64,000 nt of DNA from Adineta vaga (lineage: Eukaryota > Animalia > Rotifera). The stretch covers positions 12,276,001-12,340,000 of the forward strand of contig CP075495.1 in assembly GCA_021613535.1 (NCBI GenBank), written 5' to 3'. Under the pieces are notes generated by a model. It worked only from the letters and a program-made list of their open reading frames with translations. It was not told the origin of the DNA and made no database searches. Below, in pieces: positions 34,709 to 37,700 of the stretch. The translations under genes were made by a program, and so were the position numbers. Position 1 is the first letter of the stretch. Every line of letters starts with the position of its first letter.

Positions 34709-37700
34709 TCAAGATTCTGATGGTGTTTGTTCTTGAATGGACGGAGATGAAGAAGACAATTCTGTTGGTTCATCAAGATTAGTAATTAATGTCTAAAGAG
34801 ATAAAGAAAGGAAATGATTAATCAATTAAACTTGTTTGTTTCAAAGTGTGTGCAAAACTTTGTAGTCGTGACAATATGAAACATCAAGTGCAGGTAGCAT
34901 GCAATGTTAGTTTTAACGAAAGGTCTTTTGTGCTCATTGAAAAAACTAAAACAAAGGGGATGGAAAATCGGAGTGTACCTCTCCGGTTCCACTTCGATGC
35001 ATGTCGTTTAAATGTTTGTCAAGTTGTTGAGCAATTGAATCTTGATTTTCAAGAGCTTCTTTGCCTGATCGAATTAATTCATGCAATTGATCAATACGTG
35101 TATTGCCCTCAATTGGTAGTGATGGTGAGTGTTTTATCAATTCAAATGATTCATCCTAGATTAATGATGAGTTAGAAAAGAAGCATAAATATTAGTGCAA
35201 AGATGCAAACAAAAGCAAAGGAAAACAAAATGTTTTTTTTTTTCGTCTAAGAATTAATCAAATCTAGTGAAACATGCAGTCAATTAACAATATTTACGAT
35301 AACTTACAGTATTCGATGATGAACTGTGATTATTAAGAAATGATCGTTCGTCTAATTGACGTTTTAACGATTGACTTTCTTCAATGGCTGTATTATGAGC
35401 TGATTGTAAACGTTCAATCTCAGCACGAAGTTGTTTCATTTCATCAGATAATTGATCATTCTCATGTTGAATATTTTCAAGTATTACATCTTTCTATAAA
35501 AATAATCAAATTTTAGATTGACAAAAGTAAATCTTTTCAAAATTCAATTACATTTTTAAGATCAGCAAGTAAAATTTCTTCTTTACTTCTTACTGTTTGT
35601 TCAATTTCTTTCAATTGATTTTCCTGAAAACAAAAGTAAATAGAAATTTCCGAGAATCTTTTCCTTATAACAAAACTAACCACATCATTCATATTTTTAT
35701 AAAGTTGATCATTTTCATGTTTGAGTTTGTTACATTCTTCTTGTAAAGTACGCTGAAAATAGAAAAAAAAAGAATAATTAATATTCAAATAAATAAAAAA
35801 GAATAGATACGATATCTTTTACTTATGTTCAGACGCCATCTTTTCGAATCTTAGCACGATTGATTTATCATGACGAGCCTTATAATGCGACTGGCCATGG
35901 GACAAAGTATATATCACTTTCTATACTGTAATCAAGAGAACCTTGATACTCGGAAAGGATATATAACAATGCATATAGGGTTGGCACGGGCAAGGCATTG
36001 ATGAAATAAATCAATAATGCATTCAGAGAATGGATTAAGGCTGTTCATCATGACATGAGAAGATATCTGTTTATACTTTCATAGAACGATATCAGTTAGA
36101 TTCGAACTCGAGTTCAAATGATTTCATTCGATTAAAACCACTAAACTAGAGAAATATTTACTTTGCTTGTTTCATTACTGGATACGAATATTTGTTGATA
36201 GGATGAAAGCCATTGATTGAAATCCTTTGAAAAAGAAAAATTCAAAAGTTCTTGTCTAAATTTAATTCTTGATATTCTTTCATTCGTTAATTACCTGATT
36301 CTCATTTGGTAATTGATTTCTCACGTCTTGTTCTAATAGATTACTAAGGAATTGTTTTTGTTTGTCATGTTCTTGTCGAAGACGTTCTTCCACTTGTGAA
36401 TTGGTTGTCTGGAATAAATGAAAAAAAGAACACAAATCATTTTATCATGCATACTAGTCTCAAATCACATTCACGATAACAAAGCAATATAGTGTTCATT
36501 CAAATAAATAAGCAAACCCATTGAAAAATATAACTCCTATGGGTAATGCAAAACCACAAGAAATTTATTTCACTAGATTGCGTTAGATATAAAAACCATT
36601 GAAATAGAAAACCCAGAGATAATAAAGATTAGTTTCAATTTTTTTTGATTATTCAAATTATCGTTCTATTGACTTTAGTTATTCGATCGAATTAAAGTCG
36701 CAAGTTTTTCTTCGGCTAAATTCAATTCGTTCATCACTTTCCAATTTCGTATACGAACTTTCTATGAGAAAAAAAAACCAAATAATGATTCAGATGTGTA
36801 TTCGCTCAGTGAGAAAATTAGAGTAAATATCAAGGAAAATTCAGCAGTAAATATGAATTTTCATCATAGCGAGTAGCACATAAGTTTCGTCTGTTTTCTC
36901 CGAATTAGAGAGTAGGAAAAAAATTTATATTTACATCATTTCTTGCTTTGACTTCTTCGAGTTCCTTTCGTAATGAATCGATTTGTGTATTTTTATCAGC
37001 TAATTCTTTGTTGAGAGATCTAAAAACGAAAGAAAATAGAAATGAAGAAAAAGATTCTTCGACAAGTTTTACTCTTCTTGTTGACCATTTGTTTTCAATT
37101 GTTCAATTTCTTTTCGTAATTCATTTTGTTGTGATTGATATTGAGACTAAATAATGGAAATTGATTGATCGAAATTACAAAACAACAAGAAGATATTTTA
37201 CTTGAATATCATCAAATTTCTTTTTATATTGTTCATTTTCTTGTGTTAATTGTTTAACTTCTTGTTCCAATTTCTGACGTTCTTCATTATTTGTTGGTTC
37301 AACACGAGCGATTTCTGCATGTTGTAATTGATCATTTTGTGATTCTAATTCTTCTATACGACGTTTATATTCATTCAATTGATTTACATGTAATGTTCGA
37401 TGATCATTTAATTCTTTCAAGATTTTTTCTTCATTATGTTTAAATTGTTTTTGAATTTCTTGAATTTTTTGAGATAATTGTTGATTTGAACTAAAAGAAA
37501 TGATGAATTTTTACATACGAAGATAAAATATTCATATCCTACCGAATTAATGTATCTTTTTCTTTTTGTATTTCTTGAAGTGTTAAGTCCTTTGATTCTA
37601 ATTGTTTTTCTAATTTACCATTATCAATTGATAATTTTTTAATTTGATCATTAACTACACGAGCTTGAACATTCGTCGAATCCGAATTATTATTGATTAA

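Follow-up and report, generated by a model that had tools for sequence, protein, structure and literature searches.

The window, a 64-kb stretch of the Adineta vaga genome, contains on its minus strand a gene that codes for a TM-anchored coiled-coil protein, and one intron of this gene hosts the RNA described here. The host intron occupies positions 35753–36161 (409 nt, GT..AG), and its joint, 35752/36162, is present in a spliced RNA contig from run X12. The introns adjoining it measure 53–70 nt. The first-pass annotation had likewise reported a 409-nt intron among short ones, with an RNA ending ~72 nt upstream of the 3′ splice site; by the spliced contig this distance is 72 nt. Its naming of the host gene as RRBP1/kinectin found no comparable support: the host protein was searched exon by exon, Pfam returned nothing above the cut-off for five host-gene exons, and an Atlas search with the host gene gave a weak lead (0.80). 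A second long intron of the gene (526 nt) contains another C/D RNA, and the neighbouring long intron carries a conserved alternative exon-like block. A paralogous or ohnologous copy of the snoRNA was sought in the genome and none was found; in the ohnologous host gene, on contig 5, the corresponding intron is short and without the element.

Within the host intron, positions 35825–36056 of the minus strand hold a predicted box C/D snoRNA of 232 nt, whose boxes, guide and terminal stem can be read directly and which is backed by a contig and by orthologues. RNA positions are given as p = 36057 − x, where x is the window position. The terminal stem joins AUGU (p1–4) to ACAU (p229–232) over 3–4 bp. 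Supporting it, a covarying external stem pairs GAUAUCUU in the flanking intron (36060–36067, 5′ arm) with AAGAUAUC (35811–35818, 3′ arm); this is helix 1 of the RNAalifold consensus, and two of its pairs have changes on both sides. Box C (AUGAUGA, 36045–36051, p6–12) is aligned with its counterpart in the Rfam SNORD17 consensus and is followed by the D′ guide UUAAUCCAUUC (36028–36038, p19–29) and by box D′ (CUGA, 36023–36026, p31–34), which is aligned to the CUGA at SNORD17 model positions ~30–33. Box D (CUGA, 35829–35832, p225–228) was also read directly, and CTGA occurs exactly twice in the 232 nt, as D′ and as D. The GCC between box C and the guide (36039–36041) is predicted to pair with GGC (35835–35837) just before box D, forming the invariant helix 4 of the RNAalifold consensus. 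The D′-to-D insert thus flanked by the two CUGA boxes comes to ~190 nt, and the guide to 11 nt. All of the C/D letters listed at first reading (AUGU-C-AUGAUGA ... CUGA-ACAU) were recovered here, on the minus strand.

In 300 block shuffles of the window, the combination of a C box, a perfect 10-nt rRNA complement and N-CTGA arose by chance 0.0067 times per window, versus one observed. An H/ACA or composite snoRNA was considered and rejected because the ACA that follows box D is not conserved, being ACC in the L026 group. We hold it very probable that 35825–36056 encodes a genuine box C/D methylation guide aimed at its predicted target uridine.

That target lies in the LSU rRNA. The complementarity proposed in the first-pass annotation is present, and its extent was corrected to an 11-bp Watson–Crick duplex between p19–29 and LSU 2675–2685 (GAAUGGAUUAA), a perfect match to the rRNA of this genome. 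The target sequence expected in the 28S, GCAUGAAUGGAUUAACGAG, is carried by the same LSU rRNA. The +5 rule points to U2678 (LSU numbering of this analysis), the partner of the fifth guide nucleotide counted back from D′; it is the U of GAAUGG and of GCAUGAAUGGAUUAAC and agrees with the uridine named earlier as the SNORD17 site. U2678 sits 94 nt 3′ of the A selected by the D′ guide of the Rfam SNORD36 consensus. In human 28S, SNORD36C acts on A3703 and SNORA48 on U3797 (PMC3511933), and SNORD17, with SNX5 as its host gene as stated at first reading, also acts on U3797 (PMC5025248). The human offset is equal (3797 − 3703 = 94), and U2678, mapped by this offset, is the predicted equivalent of human 28S U3797.

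In the 100.8-Mb genome, the 232-nt element is the only guide for U2678 that is preceded by a C box; the five other exact AATCCATTCNCTGA sites are all without one. The stretch upstream of box D shows no rRNA or spacer complement beyond chance, and its eighth position varies freely among G, A, C and U in the orthologues; on both counts we rejected a guide role for it. The 10-nt complementarity of p158–167 to SSU 672–681 was also discarded, since conservation extends over just 7 nt and no box comes after it.

Six distinct full-length orthologues of 229–231 nt were found in metagenome contigs, matching the rotifer RNA with nhmmer E values of 1e-75 to 2e-80 and lying in a collinear host gene wherever the contigs extend far enough. 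The orthologous snoRNAs are 84–88% identical to the rotifer RNA, versus 45–67% for the exons. Box C, D′, D and the guide, whose conservation in the orthologous intron had been put forward as a check, are invariant in the seven orthologous sequences. Compensatory changes affect 8 pairs, compared with 3.0 ± 1.2 in shuffles, and none of 500 shuffles reached 8; slid controls gave 0–2 pairs. In the seven-sequence alignment, some insert blocks are invariant beyond the needs of pairing.

The RNAalifold consensus comprises 71 pairs, with 97% of cells paired. Its helices 6–11 make up a long internal rod (35855–36020) that starts 2 nt after D′ and is supported by compensatory changes. The rod is capped by the apical hairpin AUCAAG-GUUCU-CUUGAU (35931–35947, loop 35937–35941), whose stem covaries from C-G to U-A. 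The three stems picked out at first reading (gcctt/aaggc, tatatatc-ctttc/gaaag-gatatata and atcaag/cttgat) all belong to this consensus, and the orthologues either preserve their pairs or compensate for changes in them. The C′ box suggested with them was not supported: AUGAUAA (ATGATAA in the DNA, 35865–35871, p186–192) reads AUGAGUAA in all orthologues and pairs with UGAUUUAUUUCAU in helix 6, and it is doubtful as C′ because it is base-paired in a helix and not conserved as such. A canonical C′ (UGAUGA) was not found in the 232-nt RNA. Directly 3′ of the rod, AAGAUU and UCGAAAA (35841–35852), with AAGAU invariant, are alternative candidates and could possibly be degenerate C′ boxes.

The loop together with the 3′ stem of the hairpin, GUUCUCUUG, can pair with CAAGGGAAC at LSU 2730–2738, which lies 52 nt beyond the target on its 3′ side. 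The duplex amounts to 9–10 bp in most bdelloid-like copies and in two copies from RPL10-like introns, to 8 bp in L035 and the L026 group, and to 5–7 bp in other lineages. Such accessory contacts between the insert and nearby rRNA do not stand out statistically, and we keep them as a hypothesis.

Expression was assessed from assembled contigs, from which strand, exact ends and abundance cannot be read. In one RNA run, a stand-alone contig of 231 nt (35834–36064) covers the element, overshooting the predicted 5′ end by 8 nt and stopping 9 nt before the 3′ end, without box D. Word depth was 22 over the element versus 1.6 and 4.1 in the flanking intron bins, and the host mRNA contig is spliced across the element. 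A separate RNA had been named as the expression test for the proposal, and this 231-nt contig with a nearly empty flanking intron answers to it. Element-only contigs of 196–231 nt were present in four runs, of which one is clearly RNA, two are metatranscriptomes and one is of uncertain type. The metatranscriptome contigs, of ~200 nt, derive from other organisms and differ in sequence, and their changes fall in the insert, where they are compensatory or pair-forming. The contig evidence indicates that the 232-nt element accumulates as a stable RNA apart from the host mRNA.

The closest counterpart by architecture is SNORD17 (HBI-43/MBI-43; RF00567), a vertebrate box C/D snoRNA from an SNX5 intron; the rotifer RNA is also intronic. 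The layout earlier ascribed to SNORD17, C–guide–D′–long insert, is indeed seen in the Rfam consensus, which spans 238 model positions (238 nt in mouse, 232 nt for the rotifer RNA). Its 5′ part reads AUGAUGA, 8 nt, AUCCAUUC, N and CUGA, and then a long helix; the rotifer layout and spacing are almost the same, and in both RNAs the long helix starts right after D′. Both also have CAG in the spacer between box C and the guide and RUGC after D′. The hairpins share a pentaloop, AUCAAG-GUUCU-CUUGAU in the rotifer and ccu-GUUCU-agg in the SNORD17 model, and the chance of this loop coincidence is 0.2%. Where vertebrates need C/U, the rotifer guide has A, matching a difference in the rRNA itself, which is GAUUAAC in the rotifer and GAUGAAC at this place in vertebrates. 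The inserts are built differently: the rotifer rod is continuous and AT-rich, while in the vertebrate consensus a GC-rich multi-branch structure holds two inner hairpins. The hosts differ as well, a TM-anchored coiled-coil gene in the rotifer versus SNX5 in vertebrates; as host switching is common for snoRNAs, the absence of an SNX5 intron in the rotifer carries little weight.

Searches with the Rfam SNORD17 model, recommended at the outset as a check, did not support the assignment. With either cut-off, gathering score or E ≤ 10, the model had no match on the 64-kb window or on stretches of 701 nt and 252 nt, and genome-wide it returned nothing at E ≤ 10. On the rotifer element it scored 7–10 bits (E 1.7–3), far below the 45-bit gathering score, while the 51-nt 5′ module gave 7.2 bits. 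Other weak Rfam matches (snoR160, SNORD98 and ceN109) reflect box-only similarity and were dismissed. Because the score is 7–10 rather than 45 bits, SNORD17 orthology rests on shared features and not on significant alignment. With this reservation, the first-pass reading of an orthologue is supported.

Long guides of this kind occur in other eukaryotes too, represented by metagenome contigs. Long C/D RNAs were found in introns next to RPS3A-like exons (L013, L058, L065 and L067) and next to RPL10-like exons (L023 and L035). Both groups carry the C-guide-U-CUGA module of the rotifer RNA and a GUUYU-tipped rod. The RPS3A-like-intron group also shares with the rotifer the GCC before the guide, its GGC partner and the 3′ end YGAAA-N4-5-GGC-N1-2-CUGA. 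In the RPL10-like-intron group, GUAUCAAGG(G)UUCUCUU(U)GAUU repeats the rotifer hairpin nearly letter for letter. These RNAs measure 145–227 nt, reside in different hosts and have no further sequence similarity to the rotifer RNA. A short candidate form of the guide, L038, has 94 nt. Rfam sn2417 (RF01222) has the consensus CUAAUCCAUUCUCUGA directly after box C, with the same guide and D′ geometry, and at 123 positions is about half the length of the rotifer RNA; sn2417 and the rotifer sequence gave no match at E ≤ 10. A literature search on sn2417, rotifer snoRNAs, invertebrate SNORD17 and the guide word yielded nothing useful.

The explanation that we favour as a whole, and consider reasonably probable, is that the rotifer RNA belongs to the SNORD17 lineage and guides U2678; common descent with vertebrate SNORD17 is argued from the features they share and is included in that judgement. 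The resemblance might instead be analogous, the guide having arisen or lengthened independently in rotifers, with its length and GUUCU loop convergent or coincidental. Any guide for the U3797 site must share the antisense element, the Rfam SNORD17 model stays far below threshold everywhere, the hosts are all different (SNX5, the rotifer coiled-coil gene, RPS3A-like and RPL10-like), and the 94-nt L038 offers a short candidate form. However, the likeness extends beyond the antisense element to the spacing of box C, guide and D′, to CAG and RUGC, to the helix after D′, to length (232 versus 238) and to a pentaloop improbable by chance, and GUUYU-tipped rods with covarying stems exist in at least four further lineage groups. 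We judge independent origin unlikely, though more probable than the rivals that follow.

Two other accounts would give the locus a different role. If the RNA acted mainly via its long insert, as a pre-rRNA chaperone relying on additional base pairs or as a protein scaffold, with methylation secondary or absent, the blocks invariant beyond pairing needs and the potential pairing of GUUCUCUUG with LSU 2730–2738 would find a ready place; in a human study, moreover, the SNORD17 segment recovered in chimeric reads was nt 58–71, the 5′ arm of the hairpin with the GUUCU loop, and roles other than methylation were discussed (bioRxiv 10.1101/037259). This is improbable in our estimate: the guide, D′ and +5 geometry are canonical and invariant, the loop–LSU pairing is not unique (the LSU has sites at −13.8, −13.2 and −12.7 kcal/mol) and shrinks to 5–7 bp in other lineages, and helices of 8–9 bp are common by chance when G-U is allowed. 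Hardly credible is the view that no stable RNA is made and that the conserved sequence in the intron has another role, for instance in regulating splicing or isoforms, with C/D-like motifs present by chance. In its favour, the same gene has the exon-like block in the neighbouring long intron, and all expression evidence comes from contigs. Yet contigs from four runs, two of them metatranscriptomes of other organisms, cover the element without flanking intron; C and D boxes occur together with both stems, terminal and external, and with a guide that matches rRNA perfectly; the element is far more conserved than the exons; and the ohnologous gene works with a short intron devoid of it.

Under the SNORD17-lineage reading, a box C/D RNA of ~232 nt would be released from the 409-nt intron of the membrane-anchored coiled-coil gene, and the short terminal stem, assisted by the external flanking stem, would juxtapose boxes C and D so that the snoRNP can assemble. 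The 11-nt guide would pair with LSU GAAUGGAUUAA and place fibrillarin on U2678, the presumed equivalent of human 28S U3797, for predicted 2′-O-methylation. The ~165 nt after D′ would fold into a rod tipped by the GUUCU pentaloop, linking D′ to a degenerate C′, and the short spacer left ahead of box D would not serve as a guide. The exact RNA ends, the position of C′ and the role of the loop are our inferences in this scheme.

The SNORD17 lineage appears to be widespread, consisting of long guides for one site that combine the 5′ module with a GUUYU-tipped rod. More tentatively, a family of long single-guide box C/D RNAs devoted to one LSU uridine may be both ancient and widespread, with SNORD17 as its vertebrate member. 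The GUUYU-tipped rod would be the family's defining extra part, kept from rotifers to vertebrates and in other lineages while stems and host genes turn over, and the loop would be a functional module needed to modify this site, either as a protein dock or by a kissing interaction with GGGAAC, an rRNA word close by.

To our knowledge, the length of vertebrate SNORD17, three times that of an ordinary methylation guide, has so far had no explanation. A rotifer counterpart and similar long guides elsewhere suggest an old insert that is under selection rather than padding added in one lineage. The loop and rod provide a small, concrete element to mutate, and a covariance model built on the natural variants could detect family members beyond vertebrates, which the Rfam model misses. 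The rotifer genome gains an unannotated snoRNA and one predicted rRNA methylation site. SNORA48 (ACA48), an H/ACA pseudouridylation guide, acts on the same human nucleotide, whereas the rotifer RNA is without H/ACA features; in humans, the SNORD17 target U3797 also receives pseudouridine.

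The 232-nt element (window 35825–36056, minus strand; element position p = 36057 − x for window position x) is a real, expressed and strongly conserved box C/D snoRNA. With the boxes and guide that the first-pass annotation had described, it carries a terminal AUGU (p1–4) followed by C, box C AUGAUGA (p6–12) followed by ACAGCC, the guide UUAAUCCAUUC (p19–29) followed by U, box D' CUGA (p31–34), an insert of ~190 nt, and box D CUGA (p225–228) followed by ACAU; D' and D are the only two CTGA words in the 232 nt. When the window was block-shuffled 300 times, a C box with a perfect 10-nt complement to rRNA and N-CTGA behind it at the correct spacing turned up 0.0067 times per window. 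A spliced contig from sequencing run X12, joining 35752 to 36162, confirmed that the host intron is a 409-nt GT..AG intron (35753–36161), which puts the 3' end of the element 72 nt upstream of the 3' splice site. The remaining host introns in this contig measured 53–70 nt, with one exception of 526 nt that holds a second C/D RNA.

All runs were read as Logan contigs, from which RNA ends, strand and level are not readable. X12 is clearly RNA because it contains the spliced host mRNA, and it yielded a separate 231-nt contig at 35834–36064 with a word depth of 22, compared with 1.6 and 4.1 in the flanking intron bins. An identical 199-nt contig was found in X14 (a second labelled organism), and the metatranscriptomes X15 and X16 gave contigs of 196 and 203 nt with 6 and 10 differences, respectively, those listed falling within p77–158. 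Coverage by all four contigs was confined to the element, as expected for the stable RNA proposed in the first-pass annotation.

A one-pass scan of metagenome contigs with the pattern TGATGA-N3-12-TAATCCATTC-N-CTGA returned 60 loci, 14 of which represent six distinct full-length sequences of 229–231 nt plus one truncated copy. The entire host gene is collinear around these orthologues wherever the contigs reach, and the boxes and guide are conserved in the orthologous intron. The RNA is 84–88% identical in nucleotides (5' module 91–94%, 3' module 85–89%, centre 71–82%), whereas the host exons are 45–67% identical in amino acids. For the alignment of the element with its orthologues, RNAalifold predicted 71 pairs, including the three nested stems noticed earlier, with 97% of cells paired. 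Eight pairs changed on both sides, as against 3.0 ± 1.2 in shuffles (0/500 reached 8) and 0–2 in slid controls, in a test that favours the structure, as this was derived from the same alignment. The metatranscriptome variants, which are independent of the alignment, agreed in direction: in X16, A97U and U144A form a compensatory pair, A145G converts U-A into U-G, and U89A and U152A convert two U-U mismatches into pairs. A flanking-intron stem (36060–36067/35811–35818) also covaries, in keeping with a C/D RNA whose terminal stem is short.

The target search used one rDNA unit from the rDNA arrays of this genome (100.8 Mb in 6 contigs), with LSU, 5.8S and SSU delimited using Rfam. The guide is complementary to LSU 2675–2685 (GAAUGGAUUAA) over 11 Watson-Crick pairs, the longest complement of the element to LSU, SSU or 5.8S; an AT-only complement of equal length sits in the rDNA spacer. 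A26, the fifth nucleotide upstream of D', pairs with LSU U2678. The D' guide of the Rfam SNORD36 consensus would pick A2584 in this LSU (the A in GUGAAGAAAUUC), 94 nt upstream of U2678. In human, SNORD36C targets 28S A3703 and SNORA48 targets 28S U3797 (PMC3511933), the same offset, and SNORD17, hosted by SNX5, targets U3797 (PMC5025248). Assuming no indels in this highly conserved stretch, U2678 would be the equivalent of human U3797, a placement based on the offset. Given the 11-bp pairing, the matching offset and the published human guides, the target assigned in the first-pass annotation holds, including its double modification in humans. The element most likely guides the predicted 2'-O-methylation of this uridine. 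No second C box with this guide was found elsewhere in the 100.8-Mb genome.

The insert forms a rod that extends from 2 nt past D' to ~20 nt short of box D. AUGAUAA (p186–192), singled out earlier as a possible C' box, is probably not one, because it is base-paired with UGAUUUAUUUCAU; it reads AUGAGUAA in all orthologues. Invariant AAGAU and UCGAAAA lie directly 3' of the rod, and either could be a degenerate C'. The spacer before box D has no complement in LSU, SSU or 5.8S, orthologues differ at its eighth position (G, A, C or U), and its GGC pairs with the GCC preceding the guide; we therefore read the element as a single-guide RNA. GUUCUCUUG could pair with LSU 2730–2738, 52 nt downstream of the target. 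This pairing spans 9–10 bp in most bdelloid-like copies and two RPL10-like-intron copies but only 5–8 bp elsewhere, and equally good sites occur elsewhere in LSU, so such a contact is purely hypothetical. Separately, UUGAUUUAUUU (p43–53, window 36004–36014, minus strand) can pair with the guide's rRNA word if G-U is allowed and differs from the guide by transitions only, as does its partner CAUGA(G)UAAAUCA (window 35865–35878, minus strand) from the rRNA target CAUGAAUGGAUUA. This likeness may go back to an internal duplication, may serve to mask a guide-like stretch within the RNA itself, or may be due to chance in AT-rich sequence (a few percent by rough estimate).

The relation to SNORD17 was assessed with the Rfam model RF00567 (238 positions, gathering score 45). 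At E ≤ 10, neither the window, nor stretches of 701 and 252 nt spanning the element, nor related loci, nor the whole genome gave a match; the element thus lies outside the family as formally delimited. Very short query stretches give weak, truncated matches that display the consensus. With the 5' module (7.2 bits), the consensus GUGAA-AUGAUGA-uccAguuu-AUCCAUUC-g-CUGA-GUGC aligned with the rotifer line AUGUC-AUGAUGA-ACAGCCUUa-AUCCAUUC-U-CUGA-AUGC, and locus L013, discussed below, gave a weak match of 10.2 bits displaying model positions 1–203. The long closing helix of the model starts just after D', similar to the rotifer rod, and its first inner hairpin (...GuuCCu-GUUCU-aGGaaC...) resembles the rod tip AUCAAG-GUUCU-CUUGAU; 0.2% of insert shuffles produced a GUUCU loop closed by at least 5 pairs. 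Model positions 58–71 correspond to human AGCCUCAGUUCCUG, the SNORD17 part captured in chimeric reads in a CLIP study (bioRxiv 10.1101/037259). Mouse Snord17, in an Snx5 intron, is 238 nt long (PMC12955892), like the model, and the rotifer RNA 232 nt. Collectively, the element is best read as a rotifer member of the SNORD17 lineage. Several orthologues (L012, L027 and L039; alignment columns ~181–192) have UGUGUUCUAUGG in the 3' strand of the rod, a sequence similar to the second inner hairpin in the SNORD17 consensus (CaGugUUCuaCuG). The window copy reads UUUGUCCCAUGG, so the feature is not conserved and the likeness may be coincidence.

The 60 loci include further C/D candidates with the C-guide-U-CUGA module, from other eukaryotes: four of 145–168 nt in the intron preceding an RPS3A-like exon (L013, L058, L065, L067), three of 192–217 nt in introns beside an RPL10-like exon (two of them in L023, the third in L035), and others, among them L031, L046 and one in a trypanosomatid snoRNA cluster (L022). 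A hairpin with a GUUYU loop was present in 15/29 distinct sequences with U before D' and in 3/18 with another letter there, mostly not snoRNA-like (shuffle rate 4%). Its stems vary by lineage (UAG/CUA, GUUGG/CCAGC, UCGG/CCGA, GAG/CUC), and minimum-energy folds place the loop at the rod tip in L013, L058, L065, L031 and L035; the L035 sequence, GUAUCAAGGGUUCUCUUUGAUU, is nearly that of the rotifer. The RPS3A-like group and the rotifer RNA share GCC before the guide and the 3' end YGAAA-N4-5-GGC-N1-2-CUGA; beyond these modules, no sequence similarity of the rotifer RNA to the other candidates was found. Rfam sn2417, a 123-position model, has the same guide. The two diverged long-guide copies of L023 (750–1420; also L064) are separated by 474 nt and apparently occupy successive introns of a eukaryotic RPL10-like gene. 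L022 (898–1050 and 1840–1990) is a repeated cluster, trypanosomatid by its Rfam matches TB10Cs1H2 and TB11Cs4H3, with a ~150-nt C/D candidate that carries the same guide for the U3797-equivalent uridine and lacks the GUUYU hairpin.

The RRBP1/kinectin label of the host gene was not confirmed when its spliced model was searched exon by exon. Its ohnologue on contig 5 (G000:C5:7377920-7381240) has collinear exons with 31–85% amino-acid identity and no snoRNA; since the matching intron is ordinary, short and empty, the snoRNA has been kept by just one member of this old gene pair. The second intronic box C/D RNA (36801–36872, minus strand, within the 526-nt intron 36409–36934) matched Rfam SNORD36 marginally (34 bits, E 0.12). 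The D guide of this RNA pairs perfectly with SSU over 13 nt (761–773), which predicts SSU A764 as the site instead of the SNORD36 target; for the D' guide, no perfect match reached 9 nt. The orthologous locus L026 has conserved this RNA in the corresponding position (32.8 bits), and X12 gave no coverage of it, as expected for a 72-nt RNA. Just downstream, block 36678–36789 (minus strand) follows a polypyrimidine-AG and contains an open reading frame closed by a stop codon; its translation is 64–85% identical to the same place in orthologous loci. No contig covered the block in the one RNA run examined, and its features fit a candidate conserved alternative terminal exon. Additionally, a second X12 contig showed a joint at 35623/35685 with four extra letters (AATC; minus strand) beside the main 35622/35680 splice, either a minor alternative junction or an assembly variant.
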